Position numbers and translations under genes: made by a program
Assembly (NCBI GenBank): GCA_964304625.1
Contig: OZ199839.1
Span: 137,770-201,769 of the forward strand
DNA: 64,000 nucleotides
Source: Kudoa neothunni
Lineage: Eukaryota > Animalia > Cnidaria
Reading direction: 5' to 3'
The notes under the pieces: model-generated
Seen by the model: only the letters and a program-made list of their open reading frames with translations
Database searches by the model: none
What the model was told of the DNA's origin: nothing
Shown: in pieces, positions 1-50,000 of the stretch
How the letters are laid out: each line of letters opens with the position of its first letter
How positions within the stretch are numbered: the first letter of the stretch is position 1

Positions 1-59
1 CTAGTTTTCTCTCATACTTTAGTAAATGACTTATTTCATTTTTATCCATAATTGAAGCT

Positions 60-132
60 AAAAAAGGTGGGGTCCATTGGACCCCAATAGAAGGAATGTG
101 TAAAGTCAATTTTCAGGCGCTCGGAAGGTTAA
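60..132. mobile_element. Terminus of a piggyBac-type element that extends beyond the window start
   Basis: Ends ...GCGCTCGGAAGG|TTAA (TTAA 129-132) with a palindromic subterminal GGGGTCCATTGGACCCC. A diverged reverse-complement copy starts at 49408 (CCTTCCGAGCGC...GGGATCTATTAGACCC) and a similar subterminal motif lies at about 26532-26552. Confidence 0.7.
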
Positions 133-2307
133 ACTGTGGCTCTGAGGGTTTGAACCATGTCCGCGACTATTCATTGCATTATCATGTTTGTGTAATTTGA
201 TTTTATTCTCAATAGTTCTCTGAAAACGAGTCATTTTCTGTTTTTATTGTGAAGCATTTTGAAGATTAAAGGGATTAAAATCAACGATTTTAGCTACGCA
301 ATAGCATGAATTATAAATTTTCCCCCTTTTTCCGATTTTTTTGTATTTTTAAAAAATAAACCAATCAGAGATGAGGTTCTAACATCACATATTATTATTA
401 TTAATTTTCTTTATCATGGTAAAATTATCAAAAAATATGCTCAAATATAATGGATTACGCAATACAGTCTTGCAGATTTATTGCGCACTTTTAGAAATAA
501 TGTCGAAAATTCAAAATATACGAATTAACTATGGATATTAATCGTGAGATAAGAGTAAAATATGTCGATAAATATAATTATAGAATTAATAAATAATTTC
601 TTCGTTCGGAAAAATAGGAGTGCATGGTTATTACTCACCTGAAATCTGTTGTTTGATTACATAGGTATGGTTAATACGCAGCAGGGAAAATTATCGCTTA
701 CTTGAAGAAAACGTGTAGATTATTAAATAATTGGAAAAATAAGGAACTAAGAGTGGCTCTAAAGCGAGCATCGGTAAGCCCTCCGGCCCCAAATCACTCA
801 CCACATTGAATACAATTGTATCAATAAAATCAAAAATATTTGCAGACTTTATTTCAAGTGATTTAAAATTTTATCGCAAAACTCTTAGAAAAAAAAATTC
901 AAACTACTCGATATAAAAATGGATGAATGGGCCAACATTCGAAAACGAGGAACACATAGCTGTCCAGAGAGTACAATATAGTAGGAAAATAAATTAGTCA
1001 ATGGCATAAAGGACCACCCTTAAAACAACATTCCTATAACTGTCTGTCGGGGACAGTTCCATGGGTTTGTTTCGAGATTTAGTATAAAAACGAACAAATT
1101 AAATAGAAAATCAAAAAGAAATAAAGAAATTATTCAAAGTACATCCATCACGCCAAAATTCTGGGACAAATTACAAAGTTAAATTTTTCCTTTTGAAAAA
1201 TAAAATGAGCTTGGTTTAAAACAGGAGAAATAACAAATTTCTTGTTGAAAAAATAATTTTGTCATAAACTGCCTTATTCGTTTCCAAAATGCTCTTCGAA
1301 CAATAAAAAAATTAATACGAAAATTTTTCACATCTCCCTATTAAAGCTATTATTAGTGCAACGAGAGAATAAATTAAAAAAGCAGAAAAAGTGGTCGCAC
1401 ACCCACACAATTTTCCCCTATATGCGATGGCGCGAAAGCATGGATATTAAATAGTGTAGGGTTATTACGCAATCGAGTCGTTCTCCCAAAAAGATGCGTA
1501 GTATCCTTGCATAACTGTACAGAGAATTTACTGTAAATATAATTGAAAAAATTAAAATGTTTAACATTCAATTCGATTCAACGTTTTTAATATTAATGTG
1601 GGTCATTAAATCTTTTTTTTCAAAAAATTATCAGTTACGGGTAAAAAAAGTACGGGAAACACCGACTTAAAAGTTTATTTGTGTCTAAATTATTTTAATG
1701 ATAACTGTTGTAACGCGAAAAAAACCAAATGACAACAATAACAATATGATAAAAATGTGGCGCCCTATTTTAATACTTTGTTAAGCTTGCACCTAACTAA
1801 AACACAACACAACAATAACCGATCTTTTACAAAATTTATAATCATTTGTTAATGTGTCTCTTCGGTCAAAGAAGGACTACAATGTTCCTTAATGCGAATA
1901 ATATAAAATTCAAACCTATAAAAGGTAATCACGAAAAATGGGATAAAGAAAAATTTTTGTTTTCCTATCGTTAAACATTGTTTATTAACGATGTTCAATG
2001 TAGGTTCCGTAACTATTACGTAACATTTACATAATATCAGGAAAAGTGTAGTAGACATATTTAATTAAAGGTTGTAGCTATTGGAAGATTGTTGGTTTAA
2101 TTAAAAGTTGAATTTCGTAATGGTTGATTCTAGCTTTATATTTTTTCAAAAAAGTTCCTCCCATATTTTAACCGATAACTCATTCCCTTCCGATATACAC
2201 AGTTAAATCGTTGAAAAATGGCTACTTAAGATAGTCGAATATTTGCGAGAAAATGCGTCAAAGGGGCTTTACATACGAAAATGCGATTAGGCAAAACCCA
2301 CCAATGT

Positions 2308-36745: not shown

Positions 36746-38017
36746 GCGGCAACTAAAAACGTCCTCTCGCGAATGTTTTTCGAATTTCTTTTTTTACGAT
36801 TATCCATAATAAAATAAAAAAATAAGGAGAGAGAAAATTTAGCTTAAAATAATAACTTCTAAATTTTAAGAATTTTTCATCCGAATGCTGTCGGATACAC
36901 TTGCGATCTCCATCTTTTTTCCAACAAACATTAAATTGTTGTCTAATTTGTTTTGATAATCACTCATGAAACTGGATATTCTTCATATGTTTTAGCATAT
37001 AAACATAAATTTTACATTGTCAGATTTATCTATACATGTTTTATTAGTTTTAATTGTGAATAGTTTAAAAACGAGGACAACCACGTTCTCTTAAAATGAA
37101 TTTTCTTAATATTTTTAGGACTGATGAGTGTTTTTTAAATAAATAAACACTATATTTTAGATGAACATTTGATTTCAATAGGTAAATAATTAAAGTTTGA
37201 TTATATGAAGTTATTATTTTATTAGAGGAATTTTTACGTGTGTTTAGTATAACATTCGACAAACTTAAAAATGTTGTTAACAAAATTCCAAAAATTGTCA
37301 TTTCTATACATTTATTAGTTTTAGTCAATTATATGTGTACCTTTAAAATAATAACCTTATTAAAGACATTAAATTTACACACAGTAATATTCTCAATTCG
37401 TGTATTTCCCCCAATTTGTTATTACTAATTTTCGACATACACAAAAACTTACAAAACAATAGAAATATAGCCTAATATTTTTTTTGAATATATTACAGAT
37501 ATAGCAAGGTGAAACAGTTTTATATTGTCATTTTCAAACATTATGTTTCTGAATTTTAATAATAAAAAATTTAATTAATTCTTAATTTTTAACAATAAAT
37601 TAAATTAAAAAAATTATAAACTAAAAAAATTGTACAACATCAGTATCTATTTTTTAAAGTTCGAAAATTATTTTCATTATAATGAAAAATGAGATCTTTT
37701 TGTGAGACACGCAATAAGTTTATATTTAAAGTTAGTCCATATAAAATTGTTATATATCAATAGTAAAAAATCTAATTAGTAATAATAAATAATTATTGAG
37801 TTAATAACTAATAGAGAAACTAAAAAAATTCAATGCTTATTGAAAAATATGAAGATTATACGTGTATCCGACCGAGTTCGGATGAAAAATTCTTAAAATT
37901 TAGAAGTTATTATTTTGAGCTGAATTTTCGCTCTCCATATTCTTTTATTTTATCATGGAAAATCGTGAAAAAAGAAATTCGAAAAACATAGGCAAGAGGG
38001 TGTTTTTTAGGTGCCGC
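36746..38017. mobile_element. Foldback-like non-autonomous element with inverted repeats of about 155 bp
   Basis: 36746-36900 is the imperfect reverse complement of 37862-38017, including the exact core AAAATAATAACTTCTAAATTTTAAGAATTTTTCATCCGAA. Confidence 0.9.
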
Positions 38018-38801: not shown

Positions 38802-39497
38802 TCTATATATATATTAAGTTGTAGTGTCCGTGTGCACTAATCTCCTCCTCATACAGAGACTTTCTTTAGTATTTAAGATTATTTTTGTACTTTAAAAAAT
38901 ACAAAATAAATTAAAAAAATACAACGGGGTTGTCTGCTTTCTTATAAAGTGATGAATTAGTAGTGTAAACTTTTTGTAAACAGATTAGAGCAGATGATAA
39001 TGAGATTAATTTATCATATGGTTTGCTAATAGGTTCAGTGATATGCGTAGATAACTTTAATTTATATTATTTAAATACAACTGAAACTTTTAAAGTTTAC
39101 TCTTTTCTACTTTTGAACGTACTTAAGACGATCTATAACATTCGTTCGTGCGAAGGCGGGAACTCGGTGTAAACGAAGATTTGTTGTTTAATCGAGAGAT
39201 TAATCTGCATGAATAAATTATTTACTTTGCACGTTTGATTAAAGATAAAAAGTTTTAATTATTTTTTAAATAAACATAAAATGATGTTAGAACGTTATAA
39301 TTAAATGAAAATAAATCCAATAAAGATTAAAGTGAAGATGATCGGATTATTGCTGCTTATTTCGATCAATAATGTAGTCAAAAGAACGCTAAAATAATGA
39401 TAATTGACTTTGAACTTAAAATGACCTTGGTCTACTCAAGGCTTTAATCTGCGTGGCCGGACAAGAAAGCCCACGCAAAGGAGGGCTTTTGCGCTAG
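38802..39497 (+). mobile_element. Non-autonomous Helitron
   Basis: 5' A|TCTATATATAT...GTGTCCGTGTG. 3' hairpin AAAGCCC-N10-GGGCTTT followed by CTAG|T. Inserted between A and T with no TSD. Pairing of these two ends is inferred. Confidence 0.6.
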
Positions 39498-40776
39498 TAA
39501 AAATATGAATCAATGTATTTATATTTTTATAACTTAGAGGATAAAATTTGTGTTTTTAAGATTATATTTAATGTTGCAATTCCTAAAATTGAAAATTATT
39601 TGTTTATAATAATCAATAATCGGCTCATACGATCATATCAGCTGCCGACCCCTGTATTAAACATGTCTTAAATAGAAATCTGATGTTGTATAAATTTATA
39701 CCGCATTTTTAAAGAAAAACGTTAATTTTGTTTTTCTGCGTTCACAATTACTCCCATACTTAGTGTGGGGTACCAATGTTAAAACGCATTATATGCAGTG
39801 TTTTGTAATATGAACCGCCTAAATTCAAATAATTCTAAACTTTAAATAACGAATTACTGATCACAAAGAAAATTTGTCATATTAAATCTTTGGATAAAAG
39901 GTTACAATTATTTGGAAATATTACAACTTCAAAGCTCTGTCTGTCTGTATGTTTAGAAAGAAAGATATTGATTTATTACAATAATATTCATATTCAACCA
40001 TTAGGGAATTTTTCATATTATAATGATGCTTATTTTCTCCATAAAATACCAATGTTATTATTTGATAACAAAATAAAAGATGGTCCTTTATTAAATTATG
40101 TTAATGCATTAACCAAACATAAGTTGGCGCTGTCATGGTAACGACACGATTACAATAATCTGTTTTATTAATTTATGAATAATCAATCTATTTGGATTTT
40201 AAAATATTAAATCATTTTCTGTTTTAATAAGTTAAATATAAAACCAGGCTATTAAAATCAGAGTCATCTCAATAACCACCATCTTAACAAACAGATCAAT
40301 ATGGTTAATCATCTTAAATTCACAGGATTAACATTATTAAAAAAAAGTATTTGTCGTAAAAATGATAACTCTGGATCGTATCTAATTAAAATAATTAGCT
40401 CACTCAATAGACTAAGATTTGAAACCAGGAAATGATTAAAATAGTCCCTAGCTCGAATCGAAATAATCTTTCGTATAGTTGAAAATAACATAGGATTGTT
40501 TGAGAAAAATTTTGCCTGTACAATCTTGTAATCTAGTGATAAAAAAATTTATAAAAAGATTATAAAAGGCTTAATTAAGTTAGCAAAGGATTAAAAAAAA
40601 TTAGTTTGAATCACCTTTTTATAGAAGACCCCACATTCAAAGTGATAGAATATCATCAATAAACGTGTGGGTTAAGTAGTTTAATTCGTTTAGGTGTTAA
40701 ATTGGAGTTATTGTTTGTGTGTGTCGGATTTGTTACCTAAGGAGATTGATTGGCGTCCCTACGGAGGTAACTTGAA

Positions 40777-42163
40777 ATGAAGTTGGATCGCTGTGTTCGG
40801 ACGTTCATAACTGAAGAACAGGTCAACACTGAAAATCTAGACTATCTAGGTATACTATCTAGAAAATTGGTCATACATGTAGGCTGGCAACGATAAAAAC
40901 ATAACAACCGGTTGTTGATAATCTATAGCAATTGGCCTAAGTTTGAACAACAACCTAAATATAAATGATATTTTTAGAAAATATCGAGTCCTGGGAATGC
41001 AAATTTGGCGAAAAAAGTCGTATTCACGAAATAGCGAGTTCATTAGGATTGACACAAAATGCGAGGGTAAGGAGCGATGGGATGTGATAGGCCTTTTAAA
41101 TTTGTTAGGCTGTGCGTCCTAATCATAATATGAACTCATCCACGGGAAACAAGGAGAAATCCACACTGTTTACTGACCAAATAAAGAAATGGATGATGGC
41201 CACATCTAATGCAGATCTTGAAACTGTAAAGGATCTTGTGGGGAGTTATCCTGATCTTATCAATACAAAGGATCCACTATGGGTATGGTTAATTCTTATT
41301 TTTTCCATTTGTTAATATTAATTTTTTAGGGAGTAATTTCAACTATTTTTATGATACTAGTTAATTAATATTTATATATCTTTAGATGGTAAAATTAATT
41401 AATTGATTTAAATTGAAACAAAAATTGTAGACAGCATTGCATTGGGCTATTAGAAATGACGATTATTTGATGGTGGAATATCTGTGTGATCACGAGGCTG
41501 ATATAAACAAAAAATCTGTATAATATGATTATTGTTTAGTTTGTATTTTGAATTAATATTTAGTTTACGGTAAGTTATTTGTGGAAGATAGTTTATTGGG
41601 ATTAATTTGATTGTGGATTAAGGGGGAAACCCCACTGCATTTAGCCGCTCGGCTGAGCCGACCAGTTATTTTTCGTTATCTCACAACTTTTTCAAGTAAC
41701 TCGATTCATTTATATGATTTTATGTAGCTTACCATTTGTAGATTTGGATTACAGTACTCTGGATAATCGAGGCCATAAGGCGGAGTCATTTGTACAAAAC
41801 ACAACACCAACCGATTTAAATATTTCCAAATGCTCTGAGGATACCAATTCTCAAGTGTCGTCAAACTTTGAAATTGATCTCTCTGAGATATATTCTAAAA
41901 GTTCTACTTATTTTGACCTTAGATATTCGCCCGAATTGTTCCAAATCTCGTTTGATAACGGTGGTAGAGATTTAAAAGTTATGGATTAATTTTTATTTGA
42001 ATGATTTAAAGATTGGCAAATGAAAACCTCAACCACTCACAAACAATCTAAACCATCCTTACAGTTACAGTACACGAAAAGTGTGGATGATCGAAAGAAT
42101 GGAGGCTTCAAAGGCTTGTTTAATAGATACCGTGAGAAATTCACCAAAAAATCCACCATATGA
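40777..42163 (+). CDS. SOWAH-like ankyrin-repeat protein, paralog A, with micro-exons
   Basis: Exons 41109-41282, 41330-41332, 41386-41388, 41431-41517, 41564-41569, 41623-41695, 41742-41960 and 42012-42163 give KKWMMATSNAD...YPDLINTKDPLW-G-M-TALHWAIRND...ADINKKS-FT-GETPLHLAA...LDNRGHKAESF. The start codon and first exons are tentative. Confidence 0.8.
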
Positions 42164-42442
42164 TGTTAACTGATTTTTATCTGCTTATACTTTTACAAAT
42201 ATATAGCTGTGGTGGTTTTTCTGCATTCGACTTATTAGAACATAGTTGCTAACTCCCTTTAATGTCGTTTATATAAGATTAATAATTAGCACTAACATCC
42301 TATCACTGGTTGTTTGATAGATCATCACACTGCGGTTTGTAGTTAAGGTAGAGGGATATAATAAATTGTATTTGGAGCCTTCACAGATCGAATTATTATA
42401 ATTTAATATATTTGATAGTAGTTGGAATTATATATAATTAAA

Positions 42443-43407
42443 ATGAACACTGAATCACAAGTTAGTCTCCTCACAGTAAAAAGTAACTCCAGGAATATGC
42501 TAGCTACTATATCAATGGAATCAATATTTTCGAAAAAGGTTTATTTTACAGCTAATTGATATAAACTTGTTTATTGCATCTAGCTCAACATGCTGGAGTA
42601 TGGGGAGAGATACGATTTTCTGGACAAAAAATGGATGGTGCTTTGCGCCGAGAACGACATCAAAGAGGTGAGAAATTTCCTCACTAGTTATCCCGATTAT
42701 ATCAACTTCAAAGATCCTGTGTGGGTGAGGTCTAATAATAATAATAATGTATTTTAATACAAAAAAATAAAGGGAGTATTTCTTTTACTATTTCGACAGC
42801 TTTCACTTTTATAGATGGTAATATAATGGTTCACTATATTATTTCATTGTTATTCTGCATAGACTATTCTCCATTGGGCTGTGAAGGAACACAACATTGA
42901 ACTTGTTCGAATGCTACTTCTTGCTGGGGCTGATATCAACCCAACTGATGTAGGTACCATTTGAAACGGAATAATTGTAATAATAATTTTTTTATAATTT
43001 AGAAACAAGTATTTTGTATCAACGTTGAACGTCTATTTAGATACATGTCTAGGGAAGAACACCACTTCATTATTCTGTCATTTATAGATTCCAGGAAATA
43101 GAAGAAATTCTGACGTCCTCACCTGGTATATCAATTAAAAATTGATAATTAATGAGTCAAAAATCTAAATTATTTAATGCTATCGTAATGAAAATTTTTG
43201 GATAAACGATAAATTATAGATTGTGACTCTCGAATAGAAGATTTCAACTCAAATAAACCGAAACAATACTCACAACTGAGAAAAATGTCGACTAAAAGTT
43301 ATTACTGTAAACATCCCACTCTAAATAAACCAAAGGGACGCCACAAAAAACTGAAGAAATTCTGCAAAATACTCTCCCTACGGAGAAGTCAAACAAATAG
43401 ATATTGA
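42443..43407 (+). CDS. SOWAH-like ankyrin-repeat protein, paralog B, with micro-exons; missed entirely by the ORF track
   Basis: Exons 42443-42538, 42584-42724, 42773-42775, 42815-42817, 42863-42949, 43003-43008, 43053-43125 and 43220-43407 are all in phase: KKWMVLCAEND...YPDYINFKDPVW-G-M-TILHWAVKEH...GADINPTD-KQ-GRTPLHYS...IEDFNSNKPKQY. Confidence 0.85.
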
Positions 43408-43879
43408 CTATGAGAACTTATTAAATTAAATAAGTAGAAACTTAATAATTTTATGAAAAAAGTTTGTTGAATCCCTCTGATATCCAGATTATTTTTAAAT
43501 ACAATGTTTTCCCGAATATAAGACAGGTCGTATAATATATTTTGGTTTAATAAAGAGCATTAGATCTTTTTTTAAGTAGGTCTTATATTTGTGTCAGGAA
43601 AAACTTTCTATGTATTATTTAGCTAATGTAACTGAATTTAATTTTTTTTTAAATAGATAGAACAATATTTTTATTATTATTAATTACTCGAAAAATTACA
43701 TTGTTGGAGATATTTTGTCATATAATTCAAAATATCTAGACTTTTAGTATCTTAATAGTTTATATTTTCGAAGTAGATCTTATAATTAGGGTTTGCAATT
43801 TTCGACGACTATAATTATTTTGAGTGGCTACCAGTTAAAATAGAGATGAACCGTTAAAATGAAGCATCGAAACCATTGA

Positions 43880-44820
43880 AGCGCGTTCTTTTAGAATTTT
43901 TATAATTTAATTTCGAAAATCTTGGTTCTAAAGCGATAGATAAATGGGTAATGCCAACAAATTCAACGAAAGTTTTGACAACAAGGAGAAAATATTGGAT
44001 TTTTCCCTCCAGAAGTCTATAGTGATAGAAGGATGATTTGAATCCTTAAGCGCCTTACGAAGGAAATTGTATTCATCTCTAAGGATAACTTTGTCTTTAG
44101 TCCCTATTAAATAACAAAGATCATCAATATGTACATTTTCAATTGATAATGGCGTTGCTGGATCAATGTTTTTTATTGTTTTAAAGAAAATGGCTGATGG
44201 AAAACAATAATTAATTCTATTTGATATAAAACCCAGGAGTTTTTCGATGATGCTTCCGCGAAAAGATTCAATTTTATTGATAAAATTAGTTCTAATCTCA
44301 AATGGAAGAAATCCAAGATTATCTTTGTGATCATTCCAAAATCATTATTCATTCAGTCAATTATAGTTGAGAAAAAAAATTATCGTTTGTTTCAGTATGT
44401 TCCGAAAATTCAACCAACGGCGTAAGTTCATCAATTAACACAGTGACAGAAAGAAATAAGACATTGACATTTTCCAAATTCTACAGGTTTAACTTCATTT
44501 AGAAAATCAACAACAGCTGGGTAATATTCTTGTATTTGCTTTAAGCAATTGTATAAGCTATACCAACGGATATCCGTGACACGAGGAATTTCTTTGACTT
44601 TTTCAAAATTGTTGTTCTTGAGATGAATCAGAAATGTTCTCTTTGCATTTCTATTCTTTGACAGAATAGATGAAAACTTCATGCAGAATTATTTAATATC
44701 CAAGAAATATTTGTCTGCAGCTTTTCGGACAGCAATGTGGATACATTTCCTTCAAATCTTTGATAAATTTTTTCATATATGACGTTGTAAGCTGTTGCTG
44801 TAAACAACGTAGCGAAATCC
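43880..44820 (-). mobile_element. Decayed hAT transposase
   Basis: VTDIRWYSLYNCLKQI resembles the hAT TRWNS.Y.ML motif, and downstream FWREN...LSKLSLNLLALP resembles the hATC dimerisation domain. Confidence 0.6.
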
Positions 44821-47057
44821 ATATAACGCTTAGTTTTCAAATGATACTTTGGCTTATTTTTGAAGTATTTTAGGGTTCAATTATTTGTGAGGAAAATGTT
44901 TTTTAAAATAAGAGATTTTTAACTTTAATTTAAGCAGTAGTGAGTGATATTACCGATGTAAAAATAAGGTAATGGCTGTTGTGAAACTTTGCTGGTAAAT
45001 TTTAATATTTTCAATAATTAACAATAATAAATAATAATGAGCTTTTAATATTTCTAAATGACTTTATGTATGATATTTAAAATTTTAAACCATATTCCTA
45101 GATTTTCGGAGCATTTTATTAAACATGTTCCAACCTTAAATACTTCGATATAGATATCATATTCACATTTTACGTAATTAATTCTTATTAAATAATTTAA
45201 CAAATTAGATTATTTTTTGACATAAATAAATTTTTAACTCATTTTTGTATATATTAATAGTATTAATTACGATGATAATTGTTGGGTATCGTGACCAGCA
45301 GTACGGTATCTGTTGAAGAAACCAAAAACGATTTCATGGGAACCAGAATTATCAGACGGACGTACTCCGACCTCCAATAAGTGAGTAATGCAGTTAATTA
45401 CAACATGGCACAATTAAAACCTGGGTAAAAATCACATAGAAATACCCAGAGGTGAATATACACATATTCGGCAATCGGGTGTAGGACCCGCCTCTTGGAT
45501 ACATTACTTTGGGACAACATTGAATCAGTTTTTGGCGCCCCTCATCGCATATAACGTTGCATTTTTGCATAAATTAGCATTCCTTTTTTTGAGTCTCCTC
45601 AATTGTTTTCTTTCTACCGCGTTCACTCGAGGATACAACAACAGTCACTAAGGTGTGATTCAATAATCATTTTATTTCTATTTAATTATATTTGAACATC
45701 AAATTCATGTAATTATTAGTAATTTCACGTTGGCTGAAAATTTACGATTCAGAGTTAACGAAAAGTAATAAATAATTACGAAATAATTGTATTTTATACA
45801 ATTTGGATACAGAGCACATCTCAACCCATTTTATGATGGCTATATGTGCATTTCCAAATAAAATATGGAATAATTTTAAACGGTTTTATTCTTTTCTTTA
45901 AGAAACGAAACGAATGACTTCAAATTATCATCATTTTCATCACAAAAAAAAAAGGCTACACGGATCAACCGAAAAATACATTATGTGGTAGTCACGTGAT
46001 CTAATGAATTAATAATTTCACTATAAAATAAAAAATAAATTATGAAAATTTCCCATCGTTATTATGATAAAAATATTATACTAAATAATAAAAATTACGA
46101 ATCTAGCTAATTAATAAAATTCCTCATTATCGGTTACATTAATTGTATTAGATTTTCTTGTTTTTAATTTTTTATCTAATGTGTGATTCGAATTCTTGTA
46201 TTAAAAACGATTGAAAAAGTGAGATTTGTTATCAAACGTATATACATATGCTACTTCAGGTGTTATTATGTATCACAGGAATTGGTGTTATTTTATGGTG
46301 TTATAAAAAGTATGGTTGCCTCTCTTCTATTAAATGAAAAAGAAGCTATCATTACGTTAGAGAAAAAGAATTAAAGGAGATAGAATCAGCTTTTGTCATC
46401 TGATCAACACCGGAAAATTGACAGGGATGTCCGGCGAGGGGACTGTGACTCCGGAGGTCACGAGTTCAAAACCCTTATCGATACTATTTGCACGACCATT
46501 GTTTCTATAGTACGGGCTACAATTATTCAATTTATTTGTGTTTTCGGAATGTATGCTCATTATTGATGCAACAAAACTGCAGATATATAATTCGGTCCGA
46601 TCCAATGAGGAAAGTCCATAATAAACAAAAATACTGAAAGGCTAAGGAACCATCGCCATCAAAAAAATAAAGTTTGAGATGACATGGTTAGCGGGTTATA
46701 TTCTCACATACTGCGAACGAAAGATTAAGTTAGAAGTTACATCATACAACTGCTTGCAGTATTTAGTGCGTTTGTGGATACAGCTAGACCAGACATATCC
46801 CCACTGTCTATGACAAACAGCTAACTTCACAAAATGATCTAAATATTTTCAACCTAAAAGATTGCTTTCAGCTGATTTAATCTGTTAAATATGACTGCAA
46901 ACATGGTATGATGCGGTGCACATCTCTACTTATTATCAATTATTATTAACACTAGAAAATGCGAAAAAACAACACAAGACTACCATTATACATAAAACAC
47001 AAAACAGAGCCAAAAATCGGTGGTAGACCAGAAACGTTTTATAAATACTGTAGAAAA

Positions 47058-50000
47058 TCATTTTGCCAAAATCTCAAGGATTTCATCTTGATTAAGCGAC
47101 TCTTTCAATTCGAGTTGTTTCACCAACTAAAAAAAGTATTATTAATGCATAATAGAAACAGATAATAATCAATTACCTGGAAATATTTAACTTCATTATC
47201 GGTGATAATTTTGAGAGTCTTTTTGTAGGCCTCTTCTATCAACTCTAATACGCGTGAATCCAATTTGGTGGCCAATGATTTGTCGAACAAATGAGCATGA
47301 CCGATATCGGGAACCAAACTATTTTCCAACGAAGGAAAACAGGCATTTTGCATAACTGTATTGTCCATACCATAGACACCAATCTAAAAGAATTGGTATT
47401 AATTGATTTTTTTGACGGTAAAACTAGTTGATACATATGAATAGGCGAGTCTGGTAACTTTCTGTAGATCGTCCATTGCGCCGGTTGTTATTTTACCGAT
47501 AAATTTGTGTTCCGCTACTCTTCCTCCAAGTAGTGCAACCATTTGTGACATCAGCTAAATCACGTTATTACAGGCGTATATTAGTGAATGCGAAAAAAAT
47601 TATAAAAGTTTTGATAAGAAAAATAATTAATTTTTAGACAGCGGGATGAAATGAGATAGCAAGAGAAACGCTCACCTCACGACGAGTGACCATGTATTGA
47701 TCTTTGGGTATGAACAAGTTGTAACCAAGCGCTTTACCTCTTGGAACAATAGATATCTATACGCGCATTTAGACGATAACACAATGAAATCGAAGAATAG
47801 ACAAACCTTTCCAATGCGCGTAGGATCAGCTCCAAAATAACTAGCAATAGCATGACCGGATTCGTGGATCGCAATAGTATGCTTCTCTTCTGGGGAATAT
47901 TTTTTGAGATTGCTACTGCCAGCAACAACCCGATCAATAGCGTTATCAAAATCGCTCGGCTGCACAAATGTAGCGTTGTTTCTAACAGCCAACATTGCAG
48001 CTTCATTACAAATATTAGCTATATCAGCACCACTGAAACTTGCAGTAGAATCAGCTAGTCTTGAGGCAAGTTGTTTCAGTTTAGTAGTATCATTTCGGTC
48101 GATAAGTTTTATTTGTTTTAGGTAGTGTTCAAACAGCTCCTCACGACCTTTCTTATCAGGTTCGGTCAAATGTATGTGTCGATCAAAACGACCAGGGCGA
48201 AGTAATGCCTTGTCGATGGAATCAAGTCGATTTGTAGCCGCTATGACAACCACTCTACTGTCGGTTGTAAAACCATCCATCTCAACTAGAATCTGATTGA
48301 CAGTGGAATCGTTTTCGCGATGACCAGCCAATGATTTTCCCTCGCGACTTGTGGCTATGGAATCGATCTCATCGATGAAAATAATGCATGGAGCGTTCGA
48401 TTTTGCCACCTTGAATAAAGATCTAATGTGGTAGGCCCCCATTCCAACCAAACTTTGAACGAAATCCGAACCAGTTGTCTGATACAATGGTACACCACAT
48501 TCATTGGCTAATGCTTTAGCAAGGAGTGTTTTACCAGTACCCGGAGGGCCATACAATATGGCGCCCTAACAAGAAAAATTTTACTGATTTATACAATAAT
48601 CTTAAGCTAATTTAGTGATTGTCTAATGGAATGGTATAACTTAGAATATTGTGACGGTTTGTACAAAATAAACCTTTAATTGCATGTCAACATGGACGAA
48701 TGCCATTTATTCTTTCTATATCTCCTGTTTATATAGATATTTCTATTTCTATAAATGGATAATTTTTCGTTTATTTTAATGTTCCAAAAATGATTTAATA
48801 TTAAATGATGCCATGAGCATGTGTTTTATTTAATCTTCGTACCATCCACTTATCGGTTACATATACGATCGAACCTAGATTATCCGGAAGATATTTTAAA
48901 TTTTATTTCGATTTTATTGAAATTACGTCTCGATAAATGTTCGATTATCCGGAATCTCGGAAACCGTAACAACTATTTAATCATAATTTGGGATAAAAAT
49001 ACCGCCAATCACCGTACGACATATAGCGCATATAGCAATGTAATATTTAACCCTTTCGTACCCCAATTTTTTATTTTATTTCATGATTTTTTATATATAT
49101 TACAGGAACTCAATATTTTAAATTGTATGATTTTATTGTGATAGAAATTAATTAGACGTATAGTTTCAGCTGTTTTTAATGTGGGTACTAGAGTGGACAT
49201 TTGGCATGAAAGGGTTAAAACAAAAATATTTATAGGTTAATTGTTTATAAGTTTTTCTTTAAAACCTAAGTTAAGCACTCAGTTCTTATATAAATTTCGA
49301 CTATATCTGAACATATGCTCTTATGTATATTAAACAAAAATTAATTATCGATTATTTAAAAAAGTATACTGCTCCTCTCCCATAGTTGTGTATTGTTTTT
49401 GGTTTTACCTTCCGAGCGCTTCAAATTCGACTATACACTTATACACTTAGTGCTTTTGGGATCTATTAGACCCACTTTTTTCTTTAATATTATGAATGTA
49501 AATAATTTTTAAAATTTCATCATGCAAAAATAAAAAAATTCTATCGACAAAATAGCACAATATTGGCAAAAAACATGATTGGCGAAAGTTTTCCGATACC
49601 ACCCAAATAATGTTTAGGGCTTATATATTCTTGTTAAATAAATTTTTACGAAATATTATTTGAGATTAACTCTCGAAAATATTAAAAATAATATTTTATC
49701 AATTATTTCATATATAATTAATTAGATTAAAGCATTACGACACAGCAAATAGTTATCAACAAAATGGACTAAAAAGGTCTCCAACGTTCAACTTAATCAC
49801 CCCTACAAATTTAAACATACGAATAACAGCGCGCGCAAAAATCTTTTTATTTAAATCCCTTTGGTTTGTATTTCTAGACTGCACACAATTATCATTGCTG
49901 GCTCGTAATATTAAAACTGACCCATACAAGTTTAATCTTAGGAATGGGACGCACGCGCAAATCAATATTTGTATTTCATATGATTTATTTGAATGTGCTA

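Follow-up and report, generated by a model that had tools for sequence, protein, structure and literature searches.

Two tandem ankyrin genes of the myxozoan Kudoa neothunni very probably carry a real and very old chain of microexons. We consider it highly likely that these genes, A and B, belong to a diverged sowah-type myxozoan family, and that their constitutive microexons of 3, 3 and 6 nt date back to a common ancestor with insects. The glycine and the next residue before TALHW, as well as two residues of the next hairpin, would be encoded by these constitutive microexons, and such ancient exons would have survived genome compaction.

Exon chain of genes A and B

The genes lie in a 64,000-nt stretch of contig OZ199839.1 (GCA_964304625.1, positions 137,770 to 201,769 of the forward strand), hereafter the window. 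The exons are read as follows.

41133..41282, + strand: gene A exon ending ...KDPLW, first and degenerate ankyrin repeat, start codon approximate; aligns with B and C
41330..41332, + strand: gene A one-codon exon Gly (GGA); recurs in paralogs, simulated
41386..41388, + strand: gene A one-codon exon Met (ATG); recurs in paralogs, simulated
41431..41517, + strand: gene A 87-nt ankyrin exon, begins TALHW at Ank position 4; PF00023, E 2.5e-7
41564..41569, + strand: gene A 6-nt exon Phe-Thr (TTTACG), Ank positions 33 and 1; from the Pfam register and paralogs
41623..41695, + strand: gene A 73-nt ankyrin exon, begins GETPLH at Ank position 2, phase-1 end; Pfam
41742..42164, + strand: gene A final two exons (probable), separated by an intron placed by eye at ~41964-42011
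42443..42538, + strand: gene B probable first exon
42584..42724, + strand: gene B exon ending ...KDPVW; aligns with A and C
42773..42775, + strand: gene B one-codon exon Gly (GGA); recurs in paralogs, simulated
42815..42817, + strand: gene B one-codon exon Met (ATG); recurs in paralogs, simulated
42863..42949, + strand: gene B 87-nt ankyrin exon, begins TILHW, Ank positions 4-32; PF00023, E 2.2e-7
43003..43008, + strand: gene B 6-nt exon Lys-Gln (AAACAA); from layout and paralogs
43053..43125, + strand: gene B 73-nt ankyrin exon, begins GRTPLH, phase-1 end; Pfam
43220..43405, + strand: gene B last exon, probable

The first donors lie at 41283 in gene A and 42725 in gene B. The introns along the chain measure 47, 53, 42, 46 and 53 nt in gene A and 48, 39, 45, 53 and 44 nt in gene B, and all are GT-AG. 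The exon coordinates, intron lengths and shared 87- and 73-nt exon lengths proposed in a first-pass annotation were all correct on re-reading. Its assignment of the 3-nt and 6-nt exons to phase 0 was likewise borne out: the chain exons are in phase 0 in A and B, and the intron that comes next is a phase-1 intron in both. Its remark that the introns of the two genes do not align agrees with our comparison, in which their alignment was no better than that of shuffled sequences (z from -0.9 to 0.6). A short-read contig from a separate run is identical to the window over positions 41000-43879, with zero differences, and an assembly error as the source of the chain is therefore rejected.

Ankyrin register and chance expectation

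Genes A and B, and a further gene C described below, are ankyrin repeat proteins by the Pfam Ank test, their 87-nt exons scoring 31.1, 31.2 and 29.2 bits against a cut-off of 21.1. In gene A, 28 of the 29 residues of this exon match PF00023 positions 4-31. The register places the 87-nt exons at Ank positions 4-32 and the start of the following exons at position 2, so that positions 33 and 1 fall to the 6-nt exon. Positions 2 and 3, which are G-x in the G-x-T motif, belong to the one-codon exons; this agrees with the earlier proposal that the two codons supply the missing G-x of the ankyrin repeat.

Chance expectation was estimated by Markov simulation of each gap, with 400,000 runs each for A and B. 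A Gly exon succeeded by a one-codon exon for any amino acid arose with frequencies of 1.6e-4 in A, 2.2e-4 in B and 1.2e-3 in C, and the specific succession of Gly and Met exons in none of 400,000 runs for A, none of 400,000 for B and at 6e-5 for C. The 6-nt exon by itself is not rare in the simulations (0.14, 0.09 and 0.03). Alone it is weak evidence; its support comes from its recurrence among the genes and from the place it takes in the ankyrin register.

Paralogs and a second copy of the region

Paralog C is located on another chromosome (contig C3) and displays the same succession of exons: GGG, ATG, an 87-nt exon and AAGAAT. Its introns are 46, 96, 113, 41 and 45 nt long, and the identity of its exons to those of A and B is only 28-41%. 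The Gly codon has undergone a synonymous change, being GGG in C against GGA in A and B.

A genome-wide scan with the splice pattern returned 26 matches, against 40 for a control pattern. Five of the 26 belong to genes A and B, to the near-identical copy of these, or to C. An additional match at C3:3203786-834, with an AU-rich 39-nt intron, predicted a fourth gene, D. Paralog D (C3:3203786-3203963), which is read in part only and lies 84 kb from paralog C, carries GGG and ATG one-codon exons and, 44 nt further downstream, an ankyrin exon whose length is again exactly 87 nt. This blind prediction is the strongest internal evidence for the chain. Judged from their sequences, A to D appear to form a family of at least four diverged genes with a shared layout, D being known in part.

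Window positions 38898-45896 have a second copy 32.3 kb downstream, at C2:209000-216000. The copies are 99.6% identical and differ by 24 gap positions and 5 mismatches, some of the indels falling in coding exons. Short reads agree with the window version rather than with the second copy, which has the look of a false duplication at low coverage or of a copy made very recently.

The chain of Drosophila sowah and the question of family

The first-pass annotation had asked whether such an architecture is already annotated in invertebrate sowah genes. It is: Drosophila sowah (sosondowah, CG10632, FBgn0036302) has FlyBase-annotated microexons GGC (Gly), TAT (Tyr) and AACGGG (Asn-Gly), listed as ME3, ME2 and ME19 (PMC8042270, Tables S4 and S5). 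They are supported by RNA-seq, and stand on the constitutive sheet, defined by PSI = 1; another exon of 12 nt lies upstream of the 3-nt exons (PMC8042270). Compared with the fly table, A, B and C all possess a 3-nt Gly exon, a second 3-nt exon and a later 6-nt exon in the same order, a likeness judged on exon sizes, their order and the Gly of the first exon. Differences are also apparent. The second one-codon exon encodes Tyr in the fly and Met in Kudoa; the two 3-nt exons are separated by an intron of 1081 nt in the fly and of 39-96 nt in Kudoa; and the counterpart of the fly 12-nt exon is part of a long exon in the Kudoa genes. Unlike fly sowah, the Kudoa family comprises four paralogs, encodes short proteins and has no Irx-type homeobox nearby.

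No named sowah protein emerged from the database searches made exon by exon, which yielded generic ankyrins or nothing. HMMER searches of cluster representatives with exon queries gave generic ankyrins only, and the ESM Atlas gave unnamed or generic ankyrin clusters. No homolog was found with a profile of the three upstream exons, nor with the last exon of paralog C. The motifs of the Kudoa genes appear to resemble the sowah ankyrin block. On the basis of this likeness and of the 3+3+6 layout, A to D are most likely sowah-family genes. Members of the sowah family have an N-terminal winged-helix domain, for which the short N-termini of the Kudoa genes leave little room. The TALE homeobox (PF05920) has no match on C2, and the nearest on C3 lies ~1.6 Mb from C and D. 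Since the Irx-Sowah regulatory block is described for Bilateria (PMC5803294), the lack of linkage is compatible with membership in the sowah family.

Proposed splicing of the chain

We infer that the genes are expressed in Kudoa and that their splicing follows ordinary U2-type intron definition, in which each short AU-rich intron would be recognised across itself. The introns would be removed one by one, each removal joining a tiny exon to its neighbour, so that exon definition across 3 nt would be unnecessary. U1 and U2 are thought unable to flank so small an exon simultaneously (PMC10250204), and the introns flanking plant microexons are reported to be removed consecutively (PMC8831610). The chain would persist because its residues are structurally required and its boundaries are removable by precise intron loss only.

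For the 13 introns of A and B that were inspected, the acceptor is without exception the first AG lying 33 nt or more past the donor. This is what would be expected if a minimal intron were measured across itself. The rule fails in the two longer introns of paralog C (96 and 113 nt), where earlier AGs are skipped, and branch-point choice therefore also matters. The sizes of the chain introns fit the median intron of 49 nt in K. neothunni, a parasite of yellowfin tuna (PMC12239612). Myxozoans reportedly often retain introns (PMC12239612), and splicing may thus be inefficient in Kudoa. Three RNA runs, from samples that may lack the parasite, contained no reads from it. As a whole, the earlier description of back-to-back one-codon exons and a 6-nt exon in sowah-like genes finds support in the four paralogs and the fly gene, while its appeal to intron definition is plausible.

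The best match to SRRM_C (PF15230) in the genome, at E 1.3, is below the cut-off; a true match could be masked by rapid divergence or by introns. The cwf21 and FF domains, the latter presumably as in PRP40, were found in the same genome where SRRM_C was not.

The first-pass annotation had also suggested that the microexons are alternatively spliced and that their skipping tunes the hairpin loops. Such skipping would keep the frame, the exons being in phase 0 and multiples of three in length, and the merged introns of ~90-150 nt would lie within the size range seen here. We nevertheless hold it to be improbable. The fly sowah counterparts are constitutive with PSI = 1 (PMC8042270), the Gly that would be lost is a core position of the ankyrin G-x-T, no eMIC-type domain was found in the genome, and the acceptors upstream of the microexons are without a nearby UGC.

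A similar chain, possibly outside animals

A metagenome collection scanned with the chain pattern gave four matches. Three were judged to be chance, with a GC content of 48-59% and no AU-rich intron-like gaps, one of them being a continuous ankyrin frame. The fourth lies on an intron-bearing eukaryotic contig, L035 (VFQM010019487.1, GCA_006365135.1, positions 1-431, minus strand), in a short ankyrin gene whose exons measure 81, 9 (PSN), 3 (Gly) and 3 (Tyr) nt and are followed by TALHW. Its five introns measure 50-57 nt and have GT(T/G)TGT donors. The chance of this chain is 9e-4 per gap, uncorrected for the size of the collection; the search pattern specified neither the Tyr codon nor the uniform donors. 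The gene adjoins a bacterial-type NHL-repeat (NHL/teneurin-repeat) gene, a neighbour reminiscent of Naegleria. The chain may be homologous to that of Kudoa and older than animals, it may be convergent, or it may come from an animal. We think it rather unlikely, though conceivable, that the pair of one-codon exons for Gly and Tyr or Met before TALHW predates animals. If the contig is non-animal and the chain homologous, these exons would rank with the oldest and smallest known to be conserved, and would have been retained with no neural microexon factor.

The same contig bears on whether the Kudoa genes could have acquired the layout independently, as ankyrin genes outside the sowah family, since its similar 9+3+3 chain may reflect a layout that arises repeatedly. 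Phase-0 introns are common in the hairpin of ankyrin repeats, the sequence searches gave no link to sowah, and the homeobox neighbour of Irx type is missing. Against this, three tiny exons of the same sizes and in the same order, Gly first, are unlikely to arise twice, and the apparent likeness of the motifs to the sowah ankyrin block also speaks for kinship; independent gain is even less probable in our estimate than skipping.

Least probable, and barely credible, is a single long intron in each gap (138-261 nt and 92-105 nt), with the AG-codon-GT strings as chance or relics and proteins without G-x: the lack of parasite RNA reads in samples that may not contain it, the weak splice signals of myxozoans (PMC13644364) and the commonness of 6-nt candidates by themselves (0.03-0.14) would allow it, but all four paralogs share the Gly and Met codons, with a synonymous change, amid introns that cannot be aligned between A and B, the chance is 1e-3 to 1e-4 per gene, and the annotated fly sowah carries a matching chain.

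Genome context

The assembly consists of three chromosomes of 17.15, 12.04 and 11.05 Mb and a fourth contig of ~18 kb, with a GC content of ~30% and an rRNA fragment of myxosporean appearance. The published description gives three chromosomes, a mitochondrial circle and a GC content of 30.4%, annotated without transcript evidence (PMC12239612). Elsewhere in the window, positions 43900-45600 hold a multi-copy diverged repeat with transposase-like remnants, at a short-read depth ~10x that of its flanks. An FtsH/paraplegin-like AAA protease gene (AAA, lid and peptidase M41) occupies 47100-48600 on the minus strand, and a pair of ~190-nt inverted repeats with 85% identity, which could be transposon ends, lies within 36746-38017. 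At C2:5424779-5428248, a match to SSU rRNA is limited to model positions 1158-1823 and adjoins unrelated sequence that bears an open frame; an inserted element or truncation of an rDNA copy may account for this.

Significance

The 3+3+6 architecture itself is already known from its annotation in Drosophila sowah (PMC8042270). Literature searches gave no main text that mentions both microexons and sowah, the fly data being placed in supplementary tables, and earlier literature may mention cnidarian sowah microexons. What may be new is the occurrence in a cnidarian, with minimal introns and no eMIC domain detected, together with the 9+3+3 chain of the metagenomic contig. If confirmed by RNA, the Kudoa genes would extend the fly sowah chain to Cnidaria. 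Inheritance from an ancestor shared with insects would mean that the chain has been conserved since the cnidarian-bilaterian split, surviving in a genome among the most reduced of any animal, and that it persisted through four-fold gene duplication without neurons or a detectable eMIC domain. The cassette of gene A, in which introns of 47, 53 and 42 nt separate the two 3-nt exons from each other and from the exons on either side, spans ~250 nt with those exons included. It would make a compact minigene for studying the splicing of back-to-back one-codon exons, which is hard in the fly with its introns of ~1 kb. Gene models built from protein hints alone, as for K. neothunni (PMC12239612), are likely to miss the microexon residues.

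Comparison with other microexon systems

Plant constitutive microexons are, like those of Kudoa, tiny coding exons in conserved motifs that are missed by annotation, and they belong to different genes, with ankyrin absent from the main text describing them (PMC8831610). The eMIC domain of Srrm234, on which the neural microexon programme depends, arose in bilaterians (10.1101/2021.02.24.432780), and myxosporeans are without nerve cells (PMC13644364). Exons of the neural programme (Srrm3/4, Srrm234 eMIC) are likewise small, 3-27 nt, and preserve the frame; they are alternative and neuron-specific, whereas the fly counterparts of the Kudoa exons are constitutive.

Runs of symmetric tiny exons are also known from parasites, in the micro-exon genes of schistosomes, which produce variable secreted proteins by exon skipping. 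The Kudoa chain differs from these genes in consisting of few, conserved exons inside a folded ankyrin domain.
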